From Oikopleura dioica (Eukaryota; Animalia; Chordata), in the NCBI GenBank assembly GCA_907165135.1, contig OU015568.1, positions 11,718,001 through 11,782,000 of the forward strand: DNA of 64,000 bases, written 5' to 3'. The position numbers and the translations under genes were made by a program. Positions 4,457 to 25,207 of this stretch are shown one piece after another (position 1 is the stretch's first letter; each line of letters begins with the position of its first letter). The notes under the pieces were generated by a model, which was not told the origin of the DNA, did not search any database, and was given only the letters and a program-made list of their open reading frames with translations.

Positions 4457-7025
4457 CCGGTAAGAAGGCTTTGAAGGCCATTGTCATCAACAGAGATCCA
4501 ACTTTCAAGTACCCACTTCCGGAAGCAATCGATTCTAGTACCAGACGGTAAGCTCGTAATTTACAGACCGCGCGGGCCGAAAAAAATAAACAAACAAGAT
4601 GGTGGTTGAATTCGATAATTGTTCATAAAATTGACATTTGAAAAATTGTTCTCAAAATGATTCTTTTCGAAAAATTGTAAATGAAAAATAAAGTAAGTTT
4701 TCAAGGTCTCAGTAGATTTTGCCCTTAGTGAAGGTCAGCCGCGCTGGCGAAAATTTGTCTGTCACAGACACAGTAACAGATAATAAACCAAACTCAAGAG
4801 ATTTTCAGCGAGTGTAGTGTTTATTTACCACTGCAATAAAACGTGGCACGGGGATATCAATCTCCATCCCTAAAAAATTTGTTTGGTCGCGAAAATGCTC
4901 TTCGCAGATTATCCGGGAAACTCATCGTGCTCCAAATTTTATCGTGCATCCGGGACGAGCTAAATTTCCGTTTGCACGGAAGATGCCTGGAAATTGGATA
5001 AGCAATTTACAATTTGCTATTTTTTCCTATTGTGGCAATAGAAAAATATTTAAATGGGATGATGGGAAAAGAAAAGTAAGGAATTTCCGGGAAATTCGGG
5101 TAGTTTTATGAGAATTTTTCATTGAATCTTTGTTTTTGCCAAAACACCATTATAATTTTTAAACTTAATTTTGACCAAAAACTCGCTCATTGTCTACTGG
5201 AAGATATCAATTTAGTACTTTTTCTAATAAGAAGGTAGACAGTCTAGCTCAAATAAAAAAATATTGCTCGAATAAAAAATTGCTGAGCTTTGAAAATAAC
5301 CGAAACATTTAATAAGGGTTTCCCTTATCACCACGAATGGTATCTTGTGAAAACAAGTATTCGAGCGAGCAAGGGAGAGTGGAAAGAAACTCCGAAGCTG
5401 GTATCACATGTGATTGCCGATTGCGGGCGCCTGCTTCTGAACTTGAGCCAAAATCTTCAATTAGACGCTCTTTATCATTTGCCGAGTTCAAGCTCATTGC
5501 TAAATCATGAGAAGTCGCATCACCATTTTTACGGTCTGAGCATCTGTATGCGAGCTTTTTCGACCGCTGGAATATCTGGTAATAAAAAAGGGGGCTTATC
5601 AAATGACCAGCAAATACTTTGATCAAACCCTCGTCGCGCTGACAGTTTGCTGTCAAATTCGACTATGATTTTTGATTGAAAGTCTCTCTGGGTGGCTTTC
5701 TTTCAAAATCTTTTTCTTGGAGACGCAGATTTTCCACGACAAAAAGCATTTATCACTTCTTTGAGTTTCTAAAAATTGCTCAGAAAAGGGGAAAGCAAAA
5801 ATTATAAGTGGAATTCCTTTGTCTTGTTTTTTCGTTTCCTTCGATTGAGTTCTACTCAAGAATCCGGAGCTTAATTCTATGTAAAGCACTTGTGCTTAAA
5901 GTTGTGGTATTCGCTTGTTCACCAGTGCGAGGCACTTCTTTTTAATCATCATATAATGTGTCAAATTGAGCAGTTGAAAGGTGTAATGTTCGAAACTCTG
6001 CGGGAAACGTCAAGTTCCGGAAGGCGCTTTTGGCGGATTTATTTCGCACCGGATCAATAAAAACAACCACGGCTAACAGAACACTGACTTTTCTTGTCAA
6101 AAAGAACATCTTTTAAAATTATCTAGGGATTTATTATGATGCTTGTTTTCGCTCGGAAGCGCGTGCCAACTTCTGAAATTAGCCCTCTTTTTCTCTCTAC
6201 GATACATAATATAAAAACAGCGAAATTGGCAAAGGGAACTTCTCGCGCTTGAAAATCTTTATTTGCTTATTTTCAAAACATGACCGTGTAAAACACTTCT
6301 TTTTGTAAATTGACCGGGAAGGGCACGTGTCCGAGCTTGAATTTCGTATTCCCCGGCGTCGGGGCTAATTTGCTTTGTCAATTTTTGGACATGACTTCCG
6401 ATTTATAATTTAAAAGAGGCGTTGAAATGTAAGAATGCTCTGATACCTTGAATTAGAGCCGATAATAAACAATTAGACAATTAGCATACATTATGAAATG
6501 ATCAATTCTCGTGAAAGTGCCAGTTTCTAACCCCTGTTTGATGATTTTTTCTTTGATGATTTTTCTCAAGAATCATTTGGAAATGAATTTTGAATTATAG
6601 AAATGATGAAACGACGATTCAACAGGCAGTACTTTTCAATTTTGTTAAACAAGCCTTTTTCTACCGAGATAGTCGACCCAAATTACGGGGGATGTTTAGG
6701 AATGTGGGTTAAAAATCCTCTCGGACATTTTTCGAGTAGCCTAGGTGTGAGATTAGGCGCGTTGTAAGGGAGCGCTACTACGCCCCCGATCGCGCGTCGC
6801 GGCGCCATCTCTAGCTGCCGCGCATCTCTATTTTTCGATGAGCGGCGGGAGGTCTCTTTCTTGCCCCATTTTACTGTAGCCAGAAGATCATCCTTCATAG
6901 CACTTTTTAGCCGCTATCTCCTGATGAGTATATAGAGACCTGAAAGTGAAGACAACGAAGAAACGAGAGATCTTCAAAAATAGAGATTAACTCGCTGCTG
7001 AAGAAGAGGTCGAAGAAGAAAAGGG

Positions 7026-9998: not shown

Positions 9999-12900
9999 AT
10001 GCTAATCGGGGCACTTCTCTTGACACTCTTCTTTTTGTCAAAAGGATCAGCCGGAAATAATGCTATACCTAGTAGTTTGGATATACAGCGGCTCTGGTTT
10101 AGCTTTGAAAAGAAACGGAAATTGATAAACTCGGTAACCGCCCCGCAATCAGTCCTTGACTTGAGAGTGTGCCACTACTCAAATTCGCAGTTGATAAGAT
10201 TTAGAGACAACGTACCTAAAATTTAAAACCAGAAAATTTTCAAAATTTTCAATTACGAAAAGTTAATTTTAACTCATCAACGCAGAAGATTGATTAGATG
10301 ATTTTTAAGAGCGCTAAACTTGCGAAAATTGCTCCTAAACTTGTTGGCAAAAAATCAGGCTGTTTGTGTGACAAGTTTATTTTTAGAGCAGCGGATACGG
10401 GCGAATCGGGGCCAACATCCGTTTTGCATTTATAACCTAATCATGTGGAAAAAAGTGTGCGCAAAGGGCGAAATCGCGGATCATCCGAATAGCCGGATCT
10501 ACACTAAAGACGGACACCTTTATTTTTCGAGGCATTTTCCAAGTTTGGGGTGCTCAAGAGGCACTCTTGAATTTTGCACAGCTAATTGATTTCAACACGA
10601 ATTAAAGGATTTTCATGTAAAAAAATGCCCACGAGTTTATTTATAAAAAAAACTCTCGGGGTTTACTGAAAAGAGTCATTTACAAGTCCACCGAGCTGTT
10701 TGTTGAATGAGATTGAATTGAATATCGAAGGAGCAGGTGGTCGAGCATTGTTGCCATTCTCAAAGTCATATTTGCAAAAGCATCAAAAATTAAACGTCTT
10801 TTTATGCCCTGATCCGAGAAGTAATCCCAGGCACGGGCACGCACCCTTTTTACCTACGTTTTCGGAATCGCGGGTCCAAATGGAAGGAAATAGGCTTAGC
10901 TTGGAAATTCCTGTTTGGAGGTGAACTTTTCTTGATGAATTTGACACTAAACTGGCGCAGCGTGGAGATGGATCACCTGACAGATTGATGCGAGGCCCCG
11001 TCGGAACCCTCTTTTCCCTTTGACACCTTAATTTTAATTTCCTTGAGATATTTCTTGGGAACGGGGCTCAAATTTTGACGCTATTTTTTCGGGCAAATTA
11101 AAACGGAGAAATTCGCTGCTTTTGGATTTCAAGCTCAACTTCCAAAAATATTAGGGCTCTTTAATTCCATTACCTGGCCACCAGTGGCGAGTAAAAACAC
11201 CACCAAAAAACCTCATCAAACAGGTGTTTCACGCTAAAATAGAACTTCCAAAACAACGCTATCCCTTGTCCTCTATAACTTCGAAATTTACACTTTTCTC
11301 GAAGTGATTTTCTTTTAAATTCCGCGATCTCAACTGAAAATACACACCTTGAAAATTTCAATTCGAAGTTTGAAATTTTCGCCAAAAATAACAGCAGAAA
11401 ATTACTTTGCCAAAAGAAAAAGTAATTTTTTCATTCACAATCTAACCTTATCCTTTCATTTTGTAGCATGTCCCAAGCTGGAAGTATGCTGGAGGCCTTA
11501 CTTGGAAGCGAGGAGATCACCTCTGTGGTCGGAGAAGCTAAGAGTTTGAAAAATTGAAATTGAGATTTTTCAAACCGTAACATAACATAAACATAGTTTT
11601 ACTAACATAATGGCAATGATGATAATTATGTCTGAAAACTCGTTGACGGAAAACTCTAATTAAATTCGTGTAAAACTATTTTATTGCTCATTAAAATTCA
11701 TAAGAAGCCATTTATCGTAATCTGTAATCTGTAGATAAAATTCGACAACACTAAAAATTTTCACTTTTTCAACTCGGGAATAGTTTTTCCGCTGCGGGCA
11801 GTTAGAGTCGTACTGGAACTGCGCGGAGCCATTCCTAAACGAAGACAAAAAATACGCAGACATCAGTCTAAGGCTCATCAAAAAAGTCCATGACGAATGC
11901 GAGGGTAATGTATTTGTTCACTTTATTCATACTCTTCCTTGATTTTTCGACGATGAAAAATCAAATTCATGCGCTTTCGTGATTATCGTTGTTGATTTCA
12001 TTGGGTGAGAGATGAGATTTCAATTGTTGATTATTTTTGCGTTAATGTATTGAGAATTTTTTAATTTTGAAAATAGACTCTTAAGATTGTTTTAGATGGC
12101 GACGAGACGGAAATCGACCTGACGGCAGTTGTTCAACTCGATCATTCTAAAGCTGTCGAGATGATAGGAAGCGTGCTCCACTATCGATAAAACTCCAGAT
12201 TACCACACTAAGCACCAATTTAACACCTAGAAAGCCACAAGGTTTAAAAAACTAGTTTGATCAAAAATGGTCTTTCTCTGGCAGCTCTTCTTCTACGGAC
12301 CATAAGACAGCAAAAATAGTCCTAATAGATATTTATATTAACCTTCATTCTAATGAGAAGAGTTGTCTATCTTTAGGCATATCGCCATCCTCAGTGCCAG
12401 ACTTATTTGTTATCAAGCAATTAACTTTGAAATAGAAGAAAGAATCCCGTTATTTTTAATAAATTGTGTGTAACGCGTGAAAAGCCGGTAATGACGACTT
12501 CCCTACATTCCGATTCAAGCCTGGTCATAATCAAGCTCTGCCTGCAATTCAAGTATTTCCCCGACAACTCTACGAGGATTTCACCATTCTTGCAAACATC
12601 AGGTGCCCGAAAACATAAATTAATCGATCTTTTCCTTGAATCAAATTTCGCCAATGTTTGAATTAACAAAATTAGGCCAGAATTTGCTCTGATGCATTCA
12701 ATAATCCGGTATGAGTTGCATTTTACTTTAGTCGGTTTTTGTCTTCACGGCACTCTTTTTTCCCCATTCACTTGATTATTCACTCCGGTACTCTGTCAAA
12801 TTGAGGAACGATTATTCACTGATTATTCACGGCAAAACTTATCAATCAAAATTTTGACCTAATTATAAAAACAATCATTAGACCCGACTACAATGGAGGA

Positions 12901-15900
12901 GTTCTCTTTGCTATCACAGACGCTTACAGAAGAATCACTTTCTTTGGACTCGAGCTTAGGGCCGAAGCAGATGGACAGATTCAAGTGAATGTCTACTGGA
13001 CCGATGAAGATCAAGAGCAAACGCAACTTGGACAAGTTTGGGACTTCAATCAAAAGTCAAGCCAGAGCAAATGGCTCAAGTAAGAATCCATGGAAACATA
13101 GAAGAGAACCATCACTTCTCTTTTTTAGATTCGCCATTACTGTTAGTGGTCAGACTGCCATGCTTCACACTGGATGCAACATGGGCATGACGAAATCGCT
13201 CCAACGAAGCGAGCCAAAGCTCAACATCAAAGCCAACTATAATTTCTACCTTGCCAAGGGCGACAATTACATGCGCCACTACATTGGTGACATTCAGGTT
13301 TTTATCGACCTGTTGATTAATCTGAAACAAGTCCTAGGAACTCCGAATTGTCGAAGGCACCGAAGCTGCCGACGAGTACTTTTGCGATGAAGTCGGCACT
13401 CGCAGCAACCTTCCAAACTCTCTTGCCGACGAGCCCGAAGCGTCTGGCGATGACTTTTCTGATCTCATTTCTGATGATGAAGAAGTCGGGGTAAGAAATC
13501 TCTCTATTCATAATTAAAAATTTCCGATAAACTTGTCTCAAGGGGAGAATATTTGCTCTCTTCCTTGATTTCAAGTTTTTCTTTGACTTCATTTTACATT
13601 ACATACCAAGGGTTATTCATTCGTTTTCGGCTCACCGCCGAGAGTTCCTGTAAGTTTATACGTCGTTCAAACGATATATTCGTGCACCGATGATCGTTGA
13701 CTGTCAGAGTGTCTACGCTAGAATTTGCATTTTTGCTATTTTTCAACGCATAATTTATGCTGCATAAGGTCCCTAAAAATATAAAATTTGTAAAAGCATC
13801 AAACACATTGATATTAAAAGAGTCTCCTTAGAACGACCCGTCTCGCTTTATTTTCTACGACGAGGTTGACGGTTCCGGGGATGGAGCCGCTCCCGGCCAA
13901 GTTGTCGATTGGGACGATGAGGACTTGTTTTTCTCGATGAGGAACACATCGATCCCTAACATTGTCATTCCGGTTATTGATCAGTATTGGGAGGAGGTGA
14001 AGGTGTAGAAACGTAGGGGCTGAGGTTTCAATATTTACGGCAATTGAAACCTAGGGAGATCTTACATACCGCGAATATTAAGATTACTTATAAAAAGGTG
14101 CTAGAAACTAACATAGCTCGCCAATTTATTTACTAAAACGCTAATTTTCTTCAACTTGCGGCCTCAACTTTTTCAGTCAAATTGACCCCAAGATATCTTC
14201 TAGTAGATCTCGATAGGTCCGAAAAACCTGCTTCAGTGAAAATATGAACCATATATGCAGAAATATGGTACACTCATTTTTTCATTCGAATCGTGTCGTC
14301 AAGTACCATGGTTTGAAATATTAAGTTTCAAATCAGCAAATCCGGTGTGCGGTGCAAACTATGAGCCAATGTTGCTTTCTTAAACTGTCTTTTTAGTCGA
14401 TTGGAATGCCGACTGATTCCTCCTCTTCTGTATCAGGTAAAGTACCAACGTTACTGGTGAACTCAGCATTCGGTTATTCCGAGTAGTGAATATTTAACAA
14501 ATGCAGGGCTTTTTATAATCAGGTTCTTGTCAAAATGGGAAATTCTCCTCTTGAATTTGTCTTGACAGCTTTGACTTAGACAGCATCAAGCATGGTGTTA
14601 TGGCTTTTGTAGTAAGAATCAAACTTGCTGCATGGCTTTTTGGCTCGTCCTAGCTTAGCTTTCGCTCGCTAAGTTTTAACATGGTGATTCTCTATAATTC
14701 GTATATCGATTGTGGATATACTTGGTGTTCATAACAACCTACGAAACTGCTTCAACGGAATATTTTATTGAAGATCCATTTGCTGATCCTTTCTTCACAG
14801 ACAATTCGCTTCTCCCGCCGGACTCTGAGTCTCTTTTCGTCGACGAAGGTACGTCTACTTTTTAAATATTCTGTAAGAATGTTCCTTTCAAAAGAATTTT
14901 TAAAATAATTATCGATTATGTAATCAAGGCTTTTCTGATCAAAGGAAGCTGTGTCCCCAAAAGTCATCAATCCGCAAATTTAAAATTGGCTTCTGACCTT
15001 TTTTGATCCAGTCACAGCTGAGTTTAATTGCTTAATTTTCAGAGCTTGCAGTGCTCAACCCCTAAGGCGAGTGCAAATTTTGGCAGTGCGCGTAAAAAGT
15101 CCCCCGGAACCCTCCATAGCTTTGTCAACTTTTAAATTGCCGCCGGGCGCGTTTATAACATGTGTGCCCAAACACGCGGCAAAAGTTCGGAAAGTTTTCA
15201 TTATTGCTACTGTACACAAATAACTTCCTTGCTGCTGAGAAGAGCAATGTGCAGCCCGGCTCCTTTGATCAGAAAAGGACAATTGCGGGCTCAGATTATT
15301 GGAAGCGAAGAAATAAGGTTAAAAAGTTTTAAAATAGGGAGTTCTTAATGCCCCGGAAGTAGTGAAAGATTATGTGAGGCGGTGAAGAGGATTGAAAGTT
15401 GTCTTAAAAGCTGGTATTGCATAATCTACAACAGAAAAAATATGTCCTGTTTTGTAATAAGGAGCATCCCAGCGGATTAGTCGTGATTCTCCTGCCATTT
15501 GTTACGAGTTCCACCGTCAATATTTGCACCTTGCGCCACTGTTGAAATTCAACATGACATTGAATGTCTCAAAATGTATAATTTTGGGCGAATGCATATT
15601 TTCACACGGAATTTCGAGCAAATTTGAACAAGTATAAATTTCGCTCCGAGGCTCAATTTTCCTCGTTGGAGAGCACTTGAATAGATTAATTGACAGTAAA
15701 GGGAGCAACTTCTTTTATTCGGTGAATTTTATGCAGGTACCAGGGGAAAGTTCGATTTTTTGGGGATTTTTTTTATTCAAATTTTATTCAAATCTTCGGA
15801 TTACTGTCTTCTATCATTCGATATTCTGGCATATTTCTAAGAAGGATTCTGTTTTCTATTCTTTATTATAAAGTTTGCTTGAAAAATTGAGCCAAGATTG

Positions 15901-18900
15901 AAAATATAACTTTCTAGTGTGTCTTTTTTCTCATGAAGATTGAGTGCCAATAATATCGTGTTCCTATTATCGCTGTTAGTAAGGCTTTGAGCAGCTGTAT
16001 TTTGCGATAACCTGTTATCCGTTGGGTTTCACGGTTATGGCGAGCAAAATGAGGACTGTTAGCAGCGATATCGACAAAACATACTCCCATATGTCATCTC
16101 GTTTCCGGCTCTATCGATTGCGATTTCAGGCACCAGCCCAAGTCATTCCGCAAATTACCTGTAATAGCCGGAGATTTCACACAGTACTTGCTTATTTATT
16201 AAAAGATCTTCTGTTTTAATGGGACCATTATTAGGAAACGTAGTAGAAGAGTATCAACCGTTTCACAATTAAATAATATAAATCAGCAAAGTTAAAAATT
16301 TCACTTGTGGTGTTTAAATATACCGCAAGCATACCCTCTCTAAGCATAAAGATAGCGAGACATACACACTTCCGGGGGAGTTCTTTATTGATTCTTTGCG
16401 CTTCCCGAGCGAAAATTGAAAAACATCTGTGGATTGTTGAAGCGGCCTCGAGAAGTTCAAAGAGGCACAAATACATTAAGCACCTCCTCTATTTGACCTT
16501 TTCAATCTGTGGCCTCGATTGATCTGTCACCGATCACTACTTCGCTTTTTCTAATCTGACGTTTATCGCGCCCTTTTAGTATTCATGGACGAAAAAAAAT
16601 GAAAATAAGTTATCCTTCTACATTTACCAAAAACTTTAGCTGCCCTGATGAACAACCTGATCAGTCCAGACCTGGTCACTCCTGTTCCCGAAACCACCAC
16701 TCATCAAGAGCCAAAAGCCATGCACAGTGAAAATGGTAAAAATACCCACAACAAAACCATGATCAAAATGTTTCAAAATCGTCACCCATTTACTTTTATA
16801 GTAATTTCGAGGATAAGCCAAAAAGGATAAAATTCAAAAACCGAGATAAAAGACCCGTGACATTTAGCAAAAGGGCTGCATGCATCATTTGGGGATTCGG
16901 GCACGCGCTTCCTGCGCTTTCAAATGAATACGCAGGGCATTGTAGCAGGAAGTCATAAGGATATAAAGCTCGGTCAGGTACAACCGTTGACCTTGTCGAA
17001 AGTAACCCTTTATTTGGAGAAAAACAAAACAAATTCGAAAATAACGGCGCGGGGTTTTCATCTTGTCCGACATCTCCGATGCTTTCACCGGAAAGAATCG
17101 GCACTTTGGAGTTTATATTTGTGAAATTTCACTTTCTAAGTAACGCGAATTTGAAGAGCACAAAAGTTTTAAAATTCAATAATTTTTTTTTCAAACTTTC
17201 AGTAGAGGGCGCCGCAGCGCGCGCATCGTATGGGGAGTAGGGGCGCCCTGAACCATTGAAAAAATTTTTGCGCTGCGAATTTTTACCGTCTCTCTCAAGA
17301 CTTTCAAGCCCAAAACAAAAGAAGAGTATTCTGAAGATAGAGTTTTTGGACTGATTTTTTGAACAGACATTGATGAATTTTCTTCGAATCTGAAAACAAC
17401 GAAGAATATTTTTGAAGATGCGAGAGATTTTTGCGATACTACTAGGGGCTCAAGGAATAGGTTTAAATTGATATATTTCGGTAAATTCATCCACGAATTT
17501 TCCAAAGAAAATCATCAATAAAACCTAAGCAGCAACAAATCTGCAATTTGCCAGAAATTCCGAGGTCATCCCTTTGACAGAAGCCCAGAAACTCGGAATC
17601 GTTAGAGCTCACAACATCTACAGAAATGCTGTGGTCCCTAAAGCTGCGAATATGAACGCTCTTTTGTGGTCAGAGCAGTTGTCCTTCAGGAACTGATTTA
17701 GACCTTGGCTTTTTCGCCCATTTGCTTGGCTCCTGAACTTGTTTTTCTGAATCAGTTTACCAGAGCTCTTGAATGGGCCCGCCACTGCAAGGACCAAAAT
17801 CAATCTCCTCCCTTTCGCGATCCATTTTGGGGAGCTCTAGGAGAAAACCGCTTCGTCTCCACTTCTTCGTCTTTTGAACCAGACCGAGCTGTAGATTTAT
17901 GGTGGTCTGAAGGAAAGCGTCATTAATTTTTCATGTAGTTTTACTCTTTTACAGCCCTTATATAATTTTTGCTAATAGAGAACAGGGTATACGAAAAATA
18001 ATAATAGGGGAAGCAAAAGTCATGTTTTCGGGAAAATACGGTCCTGCGTAAGAGTAGGCTTAATCAACATAGGGATGTGTTAGGAAAACAAAATGATCCC
18101 AAAACAATCCCGATGCGAAAGGGCCCGGTCAAGTTCATCTATTTTTATCAACAGGGAGGATGCTTACACTGTTGATAATTTATCAATGATAAATATTGAG
18201 CCGGGGAAAAGATGACCTTTAATTTTCGTTAACCAGATCAGCATATGGTCTATACGGTTCTTTCGCTCAAACGGGAAGGGCGAATTCATGACAAATTGAT
18301 TTTTGCGCTTTGGAAGGACTAATTGATAATTTCCTGAAAAATGATCATTTAACCTTCGAGCACCCCCGCGACGCGGAATTGATTTCTTTGTTTTGACGCT
18401 TCAAAAGGCAAATTTTATAATATACAGACCGACATGTGCAAGATGGGAAAGGACGGGCTTCAAAGTCACTATGAATTGCTCGCTCGACTTATGTAACATA
18501 AGTTATGTTGATAAATTTCATAATGAATTCTTGTTTTGTAAACACCTTCGCGAGTTATTAGCGACTTTGACCCCTAATTCAGCAATGTGACCGTTTTAAA
18601 CAAGTGGTTGCCGCCCAGGCGCGGTGGGTTGGCTGTGCCGCTGTAGGAATGGTTTTTTTCTTAAGTGAATATTTGATGAATTATTGATGGGAAATTTAGA
18701 CGACCGTATATTAACTCTTCTAGTGGTAAAAGGGATCAACGCTAGGCTCAAGCTCAAAGGCGGCCTCAGGATCCGATATCCCAGCTGGCAATGTTTCACA
18801 GAGTAATTTCCCCGAGTTCGGATAATCTCACGTGTTCGGTGCCGCCTCCACCTCCTTGATCTGGTTGCACCAAAATTTATGTTTTCGCGGTCCTCGCTCT

Positions 18901-21900
18901 GCTTGGATTAACGGGGTATTCACGTATCTAAAAGAAGTTGCGTGAGAAAAATTAACTCATCTTTCAAGAAATGTAATGCCTAAAATGATGTTCAAGGAAC
19001 TGAAAACTCACTAGAGCGATTTTTGTTCTATAAAGATAAACTCAGCTATGTAAAGATGCTCGTAATTACCACAGCGGGATCGAAAAAGCCATCATAAAGG
19101 ATGCGAAAAATTAAAAACAAATGACGGCGAATGGCACTTTTCCAAGATCCTCGTATGCAAATACGCGCCGACTGGCGGCGAAATCGGCCGCCCATACTTT
19201 CAAGGGGAAAGTTGCTCGCAATGTCGGCCACGTGAGCGGTGCCTCTTCGGCTTATGCATCCATCCCGACGACGCAGCGCAGCTTGAAATGATGATGATGC
19301 TCGATTCTAGCAGTAATTACTCGCGCGACCATTCTACAGCTGCCAAACGACCTGCGAGGACTGACACAAACGCCGTTGCCTACGTAGATGGAGAAGAAAA
19401 CCGAGCGTTAGATACGAGAATGATCAGCGAGGCTCAAATCGAAATTGAAAAGTCTGACAAGGAGTTTTTCGATACCTACAGATTCGATGACTATGAAACT
19501 GGAGATTATGAAGTTCTCACGATTCCGGAAATTTCCGCATTCACTGGATTGGACTACGACGAGTCCTTGTATGCAAACGAAACAGACAACTACGATTATT
19601 ACGAGGACTATGACAGCGGCGATCTTATCCCTCCAACGCCAATGACAGTGCCTGAGTTTTTAGACCAGGAAAACGATATTGGTAACTCGGGACTTTCACT
19701 TTTTAGGGATTTAGCACTGTTTGACTTCAGCCCCTTTTTAGTAATCCCTCTTTCCCCGGATGAATTTTTATGACTATTCGGACCTCGTGACCTTTGAATG
19801 CCGCTTAGATGAACGCTAGTATTAACGAGGTTGCTTCGAGGGTCACGCGCGTAATGACCACTTTGTTGCTTTATGACTTCATCTTTTTTCATTATCGCAT
19901 TATTGCTTTGCAGGATTATGTCACACATGCAGGCGCATTTCCAATATCGTAAATGCACGACTTACGTAATGTTTTCAGCCCCCGGTATGCCCGGACCTGC
20001 TGGACCACAGGGTGAAAGAGGGCCTGAAGGACCAAGAGGAGCTGATGGAAAGGATGGTGAACGAGGACCGGCTGGAGCCTATGGCCTCCCGGGCAAAGAC
20101 GGAGCTGATGGAAAGGACGGCATCAATGGATCTAATGGAGAACCAGGACAACGAGGGCCCGCTGGTGAGCGTGGACCCGAAGGACCTACTGGGCCTGCTG
20201 GACCAGTCGGACCAGCTGGACAAGATGGATCTCAAGGTCCTCAAGGTATGCACTCAAGTTTGATTTTCATAGTTTCATATTTTCTCTAGGTCCTCAAGGA
20301 GAAAGAGGTGAAAAGGGCGACCGCGGTGATCCTGGCAAAGATGGCATGCACCCTAACGAATTCTGGGACTCTTGGAGAGACTTGACTGACGATTTCCCCG
20401 ACTACCCAGACTCATTCAAGGACCGCTTCGAAGAGGGAAGTGGCCTGGTAAGTTCGCATAGAACCGCTACCAGCAAAAAAACTTTATATACAATATTTAT
20501 AATTATAAATATTTTAACATAATTTTATATTTTTAATGCATACGCTCTTTTATCAGCTAGTAGTGAACCGATAAAAATTATGCATTAAAAACTAAATAGA
20601 TTTCAAGCTAAAAATGTGGTGGGACCGCCATGGCCAAGAAAGCCCGGATGGTGTTAATGCAACACTATTTTTTGTGCCAAACGTGGACTGCAAAACTCTT
20701 GGTCATATCGTGAAAGAAATAAGGCAACAGTTTTTCGAAATCACCAATGCTTGGATTTCTGCTGCCAGATATTGCTTTCACGATGAAAATGACTCGTTTG
20801 ATGAATTTGAAGAAAATGAAGCTAGTAAATTCGCGAAGTACTTTGTCCCTGAAGGAAATTTTGAGAAATAGATCAATAAGAATCTTTTTGACTTTTTAAA
20901 TCCTTCAAATAAGAGTTTTCTGCCCGTGGAAGCGTTTTGATCTTGGACTACCTGTCTCTTTATTACAAAGAGATTCTTCATAATGAGACAGAATTCGAAA
21001 CTCATTCGATAAAACGAAGAGAGCTCGAAAGTCTCCATCACGAGGCCAGGGCGCTTCGTAATTTAGACAATTTGCTGGTCGCAAGTCCTGAAATCGAAAC
21101 CGAGGGATCAGCCGATAACTTCGAAAGTATTGGAGTTGACTTTATACCCGATATGTTTTTCGACTCATCCTCGAGCTCGTCTGACTTTTCTTTCTACGAC
21201 GATGTCAGCAGTGCTGATAGTTTTTCGTCAGCTAAAGCTGAGGAGGTTACTTTTTGTCTGGAAAGCACATTTTTTTGAAAGTCACGATTTTGCGGGCACT
21301 TTTTTGCACATTTGAAAGCTTGTTATCACTTAGAAGCTAACATGTTGTTACAAATACTAAAAATCTATTTAATTCACTTACACTTTGAAACACTCTCAAT
21401 AGGGACCCTTTGATGCTACTCAAACTGGACCTGTCGGACCACAAGGACCCGCTGGCCCGCCTGGACCTCCCGGACCTCCTGGACCACCTGGACCTGGTAG
21501 CGCAGAGTTTCGAACAGACAGTGGCTCCCCAATGCTTGTAAGTAAAAACTCCTCTAAACGACAAAATAATTGTCTAAGATGGGAGAGATTTTCCGACCTG
21601 GGCAGAGCCTTCGTGAGCCAATAAGCCCCAACGGAGATCAACGAAGAATCGTATTAGGAAACGGACAACTATGGCCTGTAAGGGTTTTGTTGACATTGAG
21701 TTTCATATTTTTGCGATTTTTTATTTCGAAAAAATCGATCTTTTTTGTGTGATTCTGAATGATAAGAAAAATAACACAGAGATTAACCAATTTTTAGGGA
21801 CCAGTTGGACCTCCTGGACCCAAAGGAAACAAAGGCGATAAAGGAGATATGGGAGAAAGAGGTAAAGATTTATTTGATGGCCCAGATAAAAAACGTAAAA

Positions 21901-24224
21901 ACTAGGACACGAAGGTCCTGTTGGCCCCATGGGTCCTGCTGGTGAAGTTGGTGCCCCCGGTTTCTGTACTGTGATTCCTCTTGATGCCAATGGTGTCGAT
22001 ATCGCCGCATCTTATCGAGGAACGCGCCCATCGAATATTGCTGATGTTCCAGAATGTCCACAAGGAGCTCAAGGTGAACCTGGCGTTGCTGGACCCCAAG
22101 GACCACAAGGACCTGCCGGACAACGCGGAGAAACTGGCCCAGAAGGACTCAAGGGTGAAAAGGGCGAAGCTGGACTTGATGGACAAAATGGCATTCCTGG
22201 CCTTCAAGGACCACCTGGTGCTGACGGACTACGTGGCGAAGACGGTCTACCTGGCATTCCTGGTATCGATGGTATCTCTGTCAAGGGCGCCACTGGTGCT
22301 AAGGGTGAACGTGGTGAGCCCGGTCCACCTGGTATTGCTGCTGAAGTCGGCGAACTTGTTTCTGTTCCTGGACCAAAAGGAGAAAAGGGTGCTGCTGGAG
22401 AGCCCGGTGAATCAATCGTTGGTCCTCCTGGACGAAACGGTGAACAGGGAGAACAAGGACCTGCTGGTCAAATGGGTATGCCTGGCAGACCAGGACGACC
22501 TGGCGAAGATGGTCAACCTGGTGCTCCTGGACCAATGGGACCTCCTGGACCCGCTGCTGCCGTTGTTGCTGGTGAACCAGTTGTTGGACCTCAGGGGCCT
22601 CCCGGAAAGGACGGTCTTCCTGGACGACATGGAATGGACGGCAAAGACGGGCAGCAAGGTCCTCCTGGTGAACGTGGTCCACGTGGTTACGAAGGTCCTC
22701 CCGGTCAGCACGGTCCTCCTGGACCTGAGGGCACTTGCACAACTACTGAATGCTCTTGCTGTATGTTTATATATAATAATGAGAGCATAAATAAAATTTA
22801 GCGGCTAAATACGACACCGTACCAGAAATGAATGACAAATTCTTCGACCACGAAGACGGTGACATGGCCTTTGTTCATCGCGAACAAGAAACCTTCATCA
22901 AGACCTCAAATGGCTGGCGACCTATTCTTATGGGACCAGCCATTCCACTTCCGGTATGATTTAAAATTTTCAATAAGTGCAGCGATAAATTTAAAATTTA
23001 AAACAGTGTGATACCGACAAGAAGGTAAAACTTTTTTTGATGAATTTACTGAAGCTCATCGTTTGGATTGAACTTTTAATTTTATCTGACAAGTTTTCAA
23101 TGCATAATTGATATTTACTTTTACACTAATTTCATGGGTTTATTCTAACTTTCAATAAGCTTATCAATTTTTCCACGAATAATTTTAGAGCCAGAATAGC
23201 TACAAAAAACCAACTCCATCAACTACTCATTCAACAACTCGAGAAGCAACAACTCGAAAAACAACGACTACGACTACAACTAGAGCAACCACTACTCGTC
23301 GAACTACCACCACTGAGCGTGCTGAAATCAAACGAACAGAAAGGCCAACATACAAGCCAGTTCCCGCTCCAACTACAACATCCACCACACAAAAATCTAC
23401 CTCAAGGTAACTGCTTATGGATATATATTATATTTTCTTTGTAGAAAAAGAGCAAAATCTTTATCAATGATATAATTATATCAATTAATAATTATTAATA
23501 AGAAATGACTTTGCGCCAATCGCCGCACGAAGAGACTGTACTGGAAAGAGAATCAGACTTGTCGCTCTTGATGTGCCAATGTCCGGCCTTACTCACGGTG
23601 TCCGAGGATTGGACCATCGATGTTACAATGCCGCACGATCCAGCCGCCTCCGAGGCACCTTCCGTGGCTTCGTCTCCGCCGTCGTCCAAGACATCAACAC
23701 CATCGTTCGTCGAAGCGAACGATATGACTATCCAATTTGCAACTCAAAGGTAACTCAAAGACATTTCAAAAGCAACTCCTAACGATACTTCAAGGATGAA
23801 TTGCTCTTCAACTCCTGGAGCGAACTTTTCTCCGAAGAAAGCAACATGGGAGCCCTTTACGGCAAATCGATCTATTCATTCTCAGGACGAGACGTTCTCA
23901 CTGACCGTCGATGGTAATTCCAACTGTTCTTTTCTTATCCAACCCAGTTTTTCAGGCCCAACAAGTCTATCTGGACCGGCTCGACCCCTGACGGTCGACG
24001 AAACCCATCAAAGTACTGTGACGGCTGGCGATCGGCTAATTCTAACAACGTTGGCCTTTCTAGTAACCTCAGGTAGCATTTCGAAACAGACAAGACTATG
24101 CTGTAAGAAACATGAGCTCAAATTTTTATTTAGAAATGGTCTCCTGAACCAGCAAGTCTCAAAATGCTCCGAGCGCAAGGTCATCCTCTGCGTGGAAAAC
24201 GCCGCGTCGGATTCTGGCCACTAG
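9999..24224 (+). CDS. COL18A1: Multiplexin collagen (type XV/XVIII-like): TSPN domain, interrupted Gly-X-Y helices, trimerisation domain, endostatin
   Basis: TSPN: EIDLTAVVQ...FPTFRF (12097-12602), GGVLFAITD (12881-13079), FAITVSG...C (13129-13297). Linker exons 13338-13490, 13832-13996, 14397-14436, 16640-16738, 19340-19681. Gly-X-Y exons 19979-22760. Trimerisation exon 22802-22953 (DGDMAFVHREQETFIKTSNGWR). Endostatin LVALDVPMSGLTHGVRGLDHRCY...KSIWTGS...KYCDGWR...VILCVEN to stop 24224. All joins are phase-compatible. 5' exons (9999-10053, 11467-11543, 11784-11904) are less certain, and COL15 vs COL18 orthology is not resolved. Confidence 0.9.
17367..18646 (+). CDS. CAP/SCP (CRISP/PR-1) domain exons inside the collagen intron 16739-19339
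   Basis: Exons 17367-17480, 17530-17689, 17764-17912, 18408-18451 and 18583-18646 give LTEAQKLGIVRAHNIYRNAVVPKAANMNALLWSEQLSFRALEWARHC...GENRF...AVDLWWSEGKFYNIQTDMCKMGKQCDRFKQVVAAQARWVGCA, a near-gapless CAP consensus. 3' end unresolved. Confidence 0.85.
20608..21245 (+). CDS. Two-exon non-collagenous cassette (about 190 aa) in frame with the collagen
   Basis: Acceptor ttcaag at 20607 (phase 0), GA-AG intron 20855-20913, donor gttact at 21246 (phase 0). No stops; acidic and Ser-rich. Confidence 0.55.
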
Positions 24225-25207
24225 AATCTCTTCCAAGAATTGAAAAACTCTATCTTGCCGAACCAACAACTACAACAACATATTTCGTACACCGAAGCCC
24301 ATCTTGACCACGAAGAAACTTCAATACTACGCAAAACTGAAAACACCAAAAACAACCTGTAAATTGTCTTCCCTTCCAGTTCAAAAACGGATCTTCCCGC
24401 TGATCTGACCTCTTTTAAAAACCCAAAATTGAGGATGAAAATCTGGGCCATTTCGAGGCGCAGTGCCTGGTCATGGCCCAAGTTTTGAAAATACAACCAC
24501 TTTTCCGCCTCAGTGTCTAAAAACAATCCTGTACAAAAGAAACAAAAAAGTGTACTGTTACAAGCAATTTTCCGAAATTTCTTCAACTATATAAACTTCT
24601 ACTTAGGTTTTTTAATTATCAATTTCCGACCTCTCAAAACTGGCGATAACGTAAATATTCAACTGTTTTTCAGTCAACCTAAAGTGCATACTATCATTGC
24701 TATCCTGTAACTGACACAATTTAATGTAACAGCATACTTTTCATAAAACACAAAATAAACTCTGACAATACCAAATTCGAAGACTTTGTTAAAATTTGAT
24801 TGATTCCAATGCACAAGGGCTTGTCCATCAAAATTCTAGAGGAAAGCGCTGAGCATTCAACTGACAGTTGAAAAAGCTTTGATTGATCTGACATTGTGAC
24901 GTGGATCTTTTGTTCTGGCGCTAGAAAGAGTGCTCAACTCGGCGGACAAAAAGTGCTGATCTCCAACCTCCGTGAGCATGATTGGTTGGTGGCGCTCAGA
25001 ATATCCGAACAACGTGGGCGGGATGATTATTCTCCATCGACCTTTTGCTCCAAGCATCAGAATACGCAATAAAATATACAAAAAAGAGAACTTTTGTAGA
25101 CGAGCTGACAAAGATTTGGCCCCGCGCCGCAAACGAAGACTGCAGATTATGCATTTCGATTGGGAAAATAAACAACAGAGATAACAACGACGATAAAAGA
25201 CTGAACA

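Follow-up and report, generated by a model that had tools for sequence, protein, structure and literature searches.

A probable CAP-headed, internally started form of a multiplexin collagen in Oikopleura dioica

Introduction

Multiplexins are conserved basement-membrane components whose N-terminal variants have distinct signalling functions, collagen XVIII with its Frizzled module being an example. TSPN is the module shared within the family, and FNIII repeats occur in one CLE-1 isoform (PMC7852327). The locus described here raises the question of whether a CAP domain, too, can head such a collagen or whether it belongs to a gene of its own. In the 64,000 nucleotides of O. dioica DNA analysed (contig OU015568.1, positions 11,718,001 to 11,782,000; hereafter the window), exons encoding a CAP domain lie on the forward strand between an upstream exon chain and a series of Gly-X-Y exons. 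From the sequence we conclude that this domain most likely forms the front of a multiplexin collagen in O. dioica and its relatives, for which it brings along a start codon and an export signal.

Results

The downstream part of the locus has the features of a multiplexin, i.e., several Gly-X-Y stretches with non-collagenous interruptions (e.g., HPNEFWDSWRDLTDDF) and a C-terminal endostatin/restin domain. Gly-X-Y open frames are found at 19979-20250, 20286-20348, 21403-21500, 21798-21870 and 21914-22735. Three consecutive endostatin (NC1) exons on the forward strand (23492-24212), colinear with those of locus L001, match PF06482 with E values of 2e-18, 3.5e-8 and 1.1e-8; the domain itself covers 23492-24073 and profile positions 2-143.

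The initial annotation placed a CAP domain inside a collagen intron on the same strand, and the exons and their database matches confirm the strand and the place between the upstream chain and the Gly-X-Y exons. A Pfam scan was divided in outcome. While endostatin was found, the two CAP pieces of the window (17529-17693 and 17702-17923) score 14.6 and 17.6 bits against PF00188 and each remain below the cut-off of 21.1 because the domain is split over exons; the intron-free orthologous reading frame P0021 exceeds it with 41.2 bits (E 3.4e-10). Both halves of the domain match the GLIPR1 structure 3q2r (E 6.6e-8 and 3.4e-7), which is the best match for each. Among the signature motifs, CAP3 (HNxxR) is read as AHNIYRN and CAP4 (G[EQ]N) as GENRF in exons A and B, and CAP2 (xxC[NQRHSK]YxPxG) as ILVCKYAPTGG in exon E. 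The CAP1 signature, GHYTQ, to which the second tetrad histidine belongs, is absent; in its place exon D of the window encodes CDRFKQVVA, which aligns through orthologue P0004 to CGHYTQVVW of GLIPR1, so that the histidine is replaced by arginine and the conserved tryptophan by alanine. This His-to-Arg change is common to all orthologues read and is, for that reason, old and tolerated. Judged from sequence, the assignment to the CAP fold stands despite the altered CAP1 motif, and an intact metal-binding tetrad is unlikely.

The CAP unit, delimited here as 17418-19681, comprises six exons, all on the forward strand. Exon 1 (17418-17460) contains the ATG and the signal-like peptide MREIFAILLGAQGI, ends with a G|GT donor in phase 1, and differs from L006 by 5.5 synonymous versus 1.5 non-synonymous changes. 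Exon A (17530-17689; AATNLQFARNSEV...AHNIYRN...LLWSEQLSF) is entered through a tandem acceptor, AAG|CAG|, and left through a GA donor at 17690 whose AG|GAA context is shared by L006; it matches Pfam CAP profile positions 1-23 and is 76% identical to L001 (dN/dS 0.02 versus L006). Exon B (17764-17918; ALEWARHC...GENRF...DLWWSEGK) matches profile positions 26-80, with 83% identity to L001 and a dN/dS of 0.007; its GT donor lies at 17919 and an alternative GA donor at 17913. Exon C (18408-18451; KFYNIQTDMCKMGK; GA donor at 18452) matches GKHYNIQTDMCKDSK of L001 and is conserved in L002, with indels beginning directly past the donor. Exon D (18583-18646; QCDRFKQVVAAQARWVGCAAV followed by G), which carries the degenerate CAP1 motif and aligns to CGHYTQVVW...VGCA of GLIPR1, shows seven synonymous and no non-synonymous differences from L002, and its donor (GTAG|GAATGG; GA at 18647) is the same there. 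The join after VGCAAV, which the initial annotation had left open, is supplied by homology: relatives P0003, P0004, P0010, P0013 and P0014 read uninterrupted VGCAAVGCEKL, giving VGCAAV-G|GA...AG|GA-CEKL and thus a GA-AG intron on the forward strand at 18647-19099. A 2-nt indel is present 20 nt upstream of the 19100 acceptor in L002 and L004.

The first part of exon E (19100-19278) encodes the CAP2 motif and a Cys-rich hinge, PYFQGESCSQCRPRERCLFGLC; it aligns through P0004 to GLIPR1 residues 118-194 and displays 18-20 synonymous versus 0-1 non-synonymous differences. Its second part (19279-19681) encodes an acidic, Tyr-rich linker of 134 residues that contains no stop and ends with a G|GTAACT donor in phase 1. 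The linker is likewise constrained (dN/dS 0.04-0.056 versus L002 and L004), and at its end an in-frame 3-nt indel is followed by a conserved TG|GTAAC; homologous linkers are found in L001, L003, L005 and P0008. The coding sequence that opens with the ATG and closes with exon E measures 1048 nt, which equals 349 codons plus one nucleotide. The GA donors of this unit are conserved between lineages and lie in an AG|GA context of the kind reported for O. dioica (PMC7072748).

Two features of the CAP unit could point to a decaying pseudogene or an exon relic within an intron, namely the sub-threshold Pfam scores of its individual pieces and DRFKQ in place of GHYTQ. We give virtually no weight to this reading, which is refuted by the selection data. 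Relative to other O. dioica-like lineages, signal peptide, CAP domain and hinge together show a dN/dS of 0.016 over 210 codons at a dS of about 0.9 (73.5 synonymous versus 7.5 non-synonymous differences), whereas the introns are only 18-66% alignable and contain many indels. No lineage read shows a broken frame or splice site, and the CAP1 change is, as described above, an old one. By these sequence measures, the CAP exons are real and under strong selection.

According to the initial annotation, the CAP domain had no obvious ATG or signal peptide of its own. This does not hold. ATG 17418 opens the peptide MREIFAILLGAQGI in a frame other than the one proposed from 17367, and an ATG followed by a hydrophobic signal-like peptide is kept in five loci from three species-level groups: the window, L006 (MKEIFAILLGAQGT, also P0031), L010 (MKEIFVILLGAQGT), L001 (MRKITIVNLLANIAAY, also P0022) and P0029, which has a hydrophobic start. 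The signal peptide was judged from two features, conservation and hydrophobicity, with a mean Kyte-Doolittle value of about 2.1 for the nine residues of its core. In-frame stops occur 5-9 codons upstream of the ATG in the window (TGA at 17391, nine codons before the ATG), L006 and L001. The region preceding the ATG contains conserved non-coding blocks and, about 170 nt upstream, a GC-rich palindrome (17207-17248) that is unique in the window, with none expected by chance. The palindrome is kept in L006 and L010, in contrast to the decaying sequence around it, and we infer that it is a candidate internal-promoter element.

The coding route into the CAP domain suggested originally, from a phase-1 collagen donor at 16738 to an acceptor before 17367 and on through HSEN-D-IDEF...LIYF (17367-17489), is correct in some of its parts. 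The donor is indeed in phase 1, and there is an AG at 17366|17367, yet the true end of the upstream exon is 16735 (G|GTAAAA) and not 16738. In the window 41 codons can be read from 17367 without a stop, and the phase would be preserved by a donor GTAAAT at 17490; an open frame of this length arises by chance with a frequency of about 14% ((61/64)^41). In L006, however, the proposed frame is broken by indels of 14 nt and 1 nt and by a stop, and no GT is found at the position of 17490, while in L010 the acceptor AG, the only one nearby, is replaced by ACAA. Moreover, past 17418 the substitutions are synonymous in the frame of the ATG and not in that of HSEN-D-IDEF. The comparative data from L006 and L010 thus contradict this exact route, which we consider very improbable. 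Segment 17367-17489, read as HSEN-D-IDEF, is by its sequence a window-specific open frame that evolves like untranslated sequence; the real frame starts at the conserved ATG.

Beyond exon E, the phase-1 donor at 19681|19682 fits the first Gly-X-Y exon (19979-20250, forward strand; A-PGMPGPAGPQGERG...), whose phase-1 acceptor (ttttcag|CC) completes the split codon G+CC to alanine, in frame. In L001, L002, L003 and L005, too, the linker closes with a phase-1 GT donor and the first Gly-X-Y exon opens with a phase-1 acceptor, and the layout of CAP, linker and collagen is thereby common to five loci and at least four larvacean lineages. The initial core idea of a CAP domain joined to a multiplexin collagen is strengthened by this fit, together with the open frame and the selected linker.

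An independent nested gene was the other option considered at the outset. It would encode a secreted CAP protein ending in an acidic tail, its transcript would terminate past 19681, and the upstream chain would splice over it to 19979. Such a gene could make use of the ATG and signal-like peptide; in principle, the linker donor could go unused, and the frame reads past it to a stop at 19771; the initial annotation of the window also describes nested genes as frequent in a genome this compact. Against it, no conserved stop or tail was found past exon E in the lineages compared, the read-through tails of L001, L002, L003 and L004 being wholly different in length and sequence, and coding constraint ceases precisely at the G|GTAAC donor, which is itself conserved. 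Neither AATAAA nor ATTAAA occurs in the 297 nt between exon E and the Gly-X-Y exon (19682-19978), and in L005 exon E and the Gly-X-Y open frame are only about 80 nt apart. Given also the phase-1 fit in five loci, a plain nested gene appears quite improbable.

Upstream of the CAP unit, TSPN-like exons of presumed LamG fold (12823-13490, forward strand) are conserved with positions 1359-2353 of L001. Pfam and PDB sequence searches of the upstream exons for TSPN were negative. An ESM Atlas model of the L001 reading frame matched best a cluster named "Thrombospondin-like N-terminal domain" (TM 0.69), and all of its feature matches were LamG/ConA-like; an AlphaFold2 model of the region (pLDDT 57, no fold match) was too poor for use. 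The TSPN identity is therefore that of a look-alike by language model and predicted structure. Exons e and f of the chain are real, as they tolerate only indels in multiples of three. In exon f (16643-16735, forward strand), the last recognisable exon of the chain, which is in phase 1 at both ends, lacks a stop and has its donor G|GTAAAA at 16736, the indels relative to L010 measure 15, 6 and 18 nt, with acceptor and donor kept; the pattern is lost directly past the donor. The TSPN-like chain (12.8-16.7 kb) runs without a stop to a phase-1 end, as does the likewise open-ended TSP1 exon of L001, and therefore probably supplies the collagen gene with an alternative 5' part.

Phase alone cannot place the join of this chain, since the candidate acceptors 17530, 19340 and 19979 are all in phase 1. 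The acceptor at 19340 (ttctacag|CT, forward strand), a candidate from the initial annotation, keeps its AG in L002 and L004 but sits within constrained codons and lacks a pyrimidine tract. A splice from 16735 to 17530, skipping the ATG exon, would produce a long protein with TSPN, CAP and collagen and may coexist with the internal-start form. Both sites are in phase 1 with a split codon GCA for alanine, the first acceptor after the open-ended chain that is both strong and conserved is 17529|17530, and such a splice would follow the default logic of alternative first exons. However, agreement in phase is expected by chance in one of three cases, and every nearby acceptor is in phase 1. In L001, furthermore, signal peptide and N-terminal CAP half share one exon, the only upstream AG (AAG|ATG) is in phase 0 and the donor that closes the upstream chain (C|GTAAGT) is in phase 1, which makes in-frame entry impossible in that species. 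We thus regard the long form as a possible but unlikely product.

At ≥95% identity, four RNA runs bearing the same species label placed virtually no reads on 14650-20600, collagen exons included, and are thus uninformative; they may stem from another cryptic lineage.

Discussion

We propose that 17418-19681 probably serves as 5' coding sequence for a form of the multiplexin collagen that starts internally, with the predicted order signal peptide, CAP, hinge, linker, collagen and endostatin. Transcription or spliced-leader addition would begin shortly upstream of ATG 17418. The product, presumably secreted, would open with the short signal peptide, followed by a complete CAP domain and a GLIPR1/CRISP-type Cys-rich hinge encoded across six exons, three of them with GA-AG introns of the O. 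dioica type. The frame would run on through exon E into the acidic, tyrosine-rich linker and, via the donor at 19681|19682, into the Gly-X-Y exon at 19979 and finally to endostatin. The TSPN-like chain would serve as the alternative 5' part, normally bypassing the CAP start exon. The model predicts two N-terminal forms from one gene, and the CAP form probably lacks TSPN because the CAP exons lie downstream of the TSPN exons.

Alternative N-termini of this kind are known from COL18A1, with a short form and long forms containing DUF959 and Frizzled that arise from an alternative promoter, and from C. elegans cle-1 and Drosophila Mp. Common to these genes and the locus described here are interrupted Gly-X-Y regions, a C-terminal endostatin domain and an N-terminal globular module that varies via alternative 5' exons with their own start and signal peptide. 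As in COL18A1, the putative internal first exon of the CAP unit carries its own ATG and signal-like peptide and requires no upstream acceptor. The differences are that the alternative module here is CAP plus hinge, for which we found no multiplexin counterpart in the literature searched, that it is located downstream of the TSPN exons, and that isoform usage is deduced from the locus itself.

Likeness to GLIPR1/CRISP-type CAP proteins (PDB 3q2r, 2dda, 1rc9) extends over the full CAP domain with its HNxxR, GEN and xVCxYxPxG motifs and includes the C-terminal Cys-rich hinge (PYxxGxxCSxC...C..LC). Unlike those proteins, the predicted product has no stop after the hinge and runs into the linker and most likely into collagen. 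CAP as a module of larger proteins of the extracellular-matrix type is also seen in mosaic proteins such as P0020 (CAP plus TSP1 repeats) and P0007 (multiple CAP plus SEA); no Collagen or Endostatin domains were present in the mosaic CAP matches. Hydra NOWA combines SCP with a C-type lectin and minicollagen Cys-rich domains and is not known to have a triple helix or endostatin. A CAP-collagen architecture was found neither in the database matches nor in the literature searched.

CAP domains bind sterols, fatty acids and acidic lipids. Since the second histidine of the metal tetrad is an arginine in every orthologue read, a role as binding module is more likely for this domain than a Zn-dependent activity. 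In view of the lipid ligands it is tempting to speculate, by analogy and as a rather unlikely case, that the larvacean CAP as a head alternative to TSPN could be a Frizzled-like, matrix-tethered trap or presenter of lipid-modified signals; the acidic Tyr-rich stretch might be sulfated and provide a second binding surface.

If true, a CAP-headed multiplexin would be a new collagen architecture. It would also illustrate clearly how phase-1 exons allow domains to be shuffled in a chordate genome that evolves very fast. Among 1.84 billion protein representatives, no annotated full-length model that contains exon E was found. With GA-AG introns such as those of O. dioica, standard gene finders can miss an entire domain.

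Results

Open frames on the plus strand define one large extracellular-matrix gene between 12.8 and 24.2 kb of the window. Its order is a LamG/TSPN-like region (12823–13490), several short acidic exons, Gly-X-Y exons with non-collagenous interruptions (19979 to about 22735) and an endostatin domain encoded by three consecutive exons (Pfam PF06482; E values 2e-18, 3.5e-8 and 1.1e-8), all on the plus strand; on this domain layout the predicted gene is a multiplexin. All relatives of the gene stem from metagenomes of marine plankton, TARA Oceans among them, or from an unannotated NCBI assembly, as would be expected for a larvacean. The long open frame 19075–19680, used in a word search, led via ORF-level orthologues to the 122-kb metagenome contig L001, which has the gene order TSPN-like, CAP, acidic linker, Gly-X-Y and endostatin in common with the window. 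Three further contigs (or contig sets) represent O. dioica-like sister lineages whose synonymous sites are near saturation, with L002/L004 spanning window positions 18015–22241, L006 16895–18267 and L010 12951–17671.

Two pieces of the window match positions 1–23 and 26–80 of the Pfam CAP profile, each below threshold because introns split the domain. Searches were run on individual exons or open frames and on unbroken ORFs of orthologues. In L001 the CAP domain is confined to two open frames. Among the ORFs of relatives, the N-terminal CAP ORF P0021 exceeds the Pfam CAP cut-off (41.2 versus 21.1 bits), the N-terminal half (as P0022) aligns with residues 20–106 of human GLIPR1 (PDB 3q2r; E = 6.6e-8), and the C-terminal ORF P0004 aligns with GLIPR1 residues 118–194, including the Cys-rich hinge (E = 3.4e-7). 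The motifs HNxxR, GEN and xVCxYxPxG are present, and the GHYTQ position reads DRFKQ (His to Arg) in all orthologues read. These matches show a genuine CAP domain over its full length. Over the 210 codons of the putative signal peptide, CAP domain and hinge, 73.5 synonymous differences stand against 7.5 non-synonymous ones (dS 0.94, dN/dS 0.016). The 133 codons of the linker gave a dN/dS of 0.04–0.056, and the introns were alignable over only 18–66% of their length, with many indels. On this substitution pattern the CAP unit, together with its linker, is functional coding sequence and no relic.

The exon structure of the CAP unit was resolved by homology, with splicing read from comparative data alone. 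On the plus strand, exon 1 (17418–17460) comprises the ATG and MREIFAILLGAQGI plus G and ends at a GT donor. The CAP domain starts in exon A (17530–17689, GA donor) and continues through exon B (17764–17918, GT donor, with an alternative GA donor at 17913 and hence an end at 17912), exon C (18408–18451, GA donor) and exon D (18583–18646, GA donor), the last of which closes with RWVGCAAV plus G. Exon E (19100–19681, GT donor) opens with CEKLKTNDGEWHF and carries the CAP2 motif, the hinge and the linker. GA-AG introns in an AG|GA context account for three of the six introns of the unit; this unusual class is reported to be frequent in O. dioica (PMC7072748). The exit after VGCAAV, which the initial annotation had left unsettled, can now be assigned: VGCAAVGCEKL is uninterrupted in five relatives, so that the intron is 18647–19099 and the split codon G|GA encodes Gly. 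The GA donor and AG acceptor of this intron are kept in the sister lineages, and a 2-nt indel 20 nt 5' of the acceptor (19100) marks the intron side. A start of exon E at 19075 (cacag|CGG) was ruled out on account of the 2-nt indel between 19075 and 19100 in L002 and L004 and the VGCAAVGCEKL reading of the relatives.

Exon A opens with a tandem acceptor of the NAGNAG type (CCTAAG|CAG|CAAC, 17524–17535) that is kept in L006 and L010; use of either site preserves the frame, with or without one Ala. Larvacean lineages (window, L001, L005 and P0025–P0028) have introns at widely different places in the CAP domain. The CAP unit has six exons in the window versus two in L001, and introns in other species follow YKQV or precede RALEW or GEPCSQC. 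Such varied positions illustrate a rapid turnover of introns.

At its 3' end, several features tie the CAP unit to the collagen. Exon E lacks a stop codon, and coding constraint spans the acidic, Tyr-rich linker as far as the G|GTAAC donor, with an in-frame 3-nt indel just 5' of this donor and divergence starting directly 3' of it. The coding length from the ATG through exon E is 1048 nt (349 codons plus one base), and the donor is phase 1; the acceptor of the first Gly-X-Y exon (pyrimidine-rich, ttttcag|CC) is likewise phase 1, and the junction reads Ala-Pro-Gly-Met-Pro-Gly in frame. The same pair of phase-1 donor and phase-1 acceptor occurs in L002, L001, L003 and L005, and in L005 the linker and Gly-X-Y frames are just about 80 nt apart. 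A CAP gene independent of the collagen would require a terminator, of which none is visible and none conserved: read-through tails past exon E differ wholly in length and sequence among lineages, and the 297 nt between exon E and the next exon contain neither AATAAA nor ATTAAA. A CAP unit joined to collagen is the arrangement supported by these comparisons.

On its 5' side, the CAP unit was initially described as lacking an obvious ATG or signal peptide and as entered from the collagen through a junction 16738>17367. The frame from the ATG at 17418 reads MREIFAILLGAQGI and leads through a phase-1 GT donor onto the conserved acceptor 17529|17530. Homologous starts are MKEIFAILLGAQGT in L006 (P0031), MKEIFVILLGAQGT in L010 and, in the species of L001, MRKITIVNLLANIAAYITTFS, which is fused straight to RNSEV; P0029, from a further species, also has a hydrophobic start. 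In the window, the nine-residue hydrophobic core after the ATG has a mean Kyte-Doolittle value of about 2, and the N-terminal peptide is predicted to be signal-peptide-like. Differences between O. dioica-like lineages in the exon 1 region are mostly at third positions of the ATG frame. In the window as well as in L006 and L001, this ATG is preceded by an in-frame stop 5–9 codons away. The reading RFKLIYF-AATNLQF was dropped in favour of the ATG frame, in which the third-position changes fall.

Only in this window is there an open frame HSEN-D-IDEF...LIYF, as a join to 17367 would require, and an open frame of 41 codons is expected by chance in about one case in seven. In L006, the stretch corresponding to 17367–17417 has 14-nt and 1-nt indels and a stop in that frame, and the GT needed at 17490 is absent. 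L010 has lost the AG of the 17367 acceptor. When combined with the conserved donor (17461), the 17367 frame runs out of frame into CAP. On the collagen side, the proposed fusion of CAP with collagen is supported by the missing stop and the phase-1 fit; neither the proposed TSPN-side junction nor the supposed lack of a start codon finds support.

The non-coding sequence upstream of the ATG at 17418 includes blocks of unusual conservation. One of them, about 170 nt 5' of the CAP start codon, is a GC-rich, perfect inverted repeat, GGGCGCC...GGCGCCC (17207–17248), which is unique in the 64-kb window and kept in L006 and L010. These blocks would fit an internal promoter. A conserved AAG|ATG is the candidate for the transcript start or a spliced-leader acceptor.

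The chain upstream of the CAP unit includes exon e (ending GAAG|GTACGT near 14849) and exon f (16643–16735). When compared with L010, all their internal indels are multiples of three nucleotides, a pattern that ends at the donor, and their splice sites are kept; on this evidence the two predicted exons are genuine. Between an in-frame stop (14695–14697) and the conserved coding start of exon e no AG acceptor was found (14695–14760), and the 5' boundary of this exon may be non-canonical. Neither exon contains a stop and the end of exon f is in phase 1, which argues that the TSPN-like chain continues downstream as part of the collagen gene. In L001, the last visible exon 5' of the CAP unit (5035–5662), which follows the TSPN-like exons, encodes Cys-rich, TSP1-like repeats (Pfam TSP_1, E = 9e-5) with a mucin-like tail rich in Thr; it is a phase 1-1 exon with donor C|GTAAGT and has no counterpart in the window.

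Phase-1 acceptors that give Ala from exon f are present at 17530, 19340 and 19979, and a TSPN-CAP protein formed in O. dioica via 16735>17530 is a formal possibility. Against it speaks L001, where a single exon encodes both the signal peptide and the N-terminal CAP half; the sole AG upstream of this exon is phase 0, making an in-frame TSPN-CAP protein impossible there. We favour TSPN and CAP as alternative heads. As to the TSPN identity itself, no significant match came from Pfam, from PDB phmmer or from a PDB profile of three rows. An AlphaFold2 model of the TSPN-like ORF of L001 reached a pLDDT of 57 and its Foldseek matches were noise; for the ESM Atlas model of this ORF, the best match was a thrombospondin-N-terminal-like cluster (TM 0.69), which is only a lead.

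Discussion

Alternative 5' exons provide multiplexins with different N-termini, for example with TSPN alone, and the N-terminal variants of COL18A1 include DUF959 and Frizzled. FNIII repeats are found in an isoform of CLE-1 (PMC7852327). The gene in the window would resemble these isoforms in its presumed variable N-terminus but differ in its putative CAP head, for which no precedent on a multiplexin was found in the literature or among the protein-search matches examined. Literature searches combining Oikopleura with multiplexin or endostatin, or CAP with collagen architectures, returned nothing relevant. An exhaustive protein search with exon E retrieved ORF-level fragments and unrelated CAP mosaics and no annotated full-length model; collagen was absent from the 10 CAP mosaics outside this gene family that were scanned with Pfam (out of 17 search matches in all). 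The predicted CAP-headed multiplexin is kept across larvacean lineages and strongly selected.

The introns of the gene contain further blocks (13560–13655, 15500–15630, 16030–16175, 16410–16545 and 16895–16985) that are 93–97% identical to L010, with few indels and no 3-base periodicity; synonymous sites between the window and L010 are near saturation. These are candidates for conserved non-coding elements or small RNAs within the collagen gene; an Rfam search of 12000–25000 gave no match. RNA reads from four runs under the same species label (three bulk, one single-cell) numbered 0–4 per run over 14650–20600, all of them at 15023–15220 (four from X4, one from X6), so that none covered an exon of the gene. 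They align with 95–99% identity, skip 15059–15145 and are loose at both ends. This spot is repeat-like, overlaps a highly conserved block (15140–15220) and suggests a dispersed element that is transcribed, or else a small transcript of paralogous origin.
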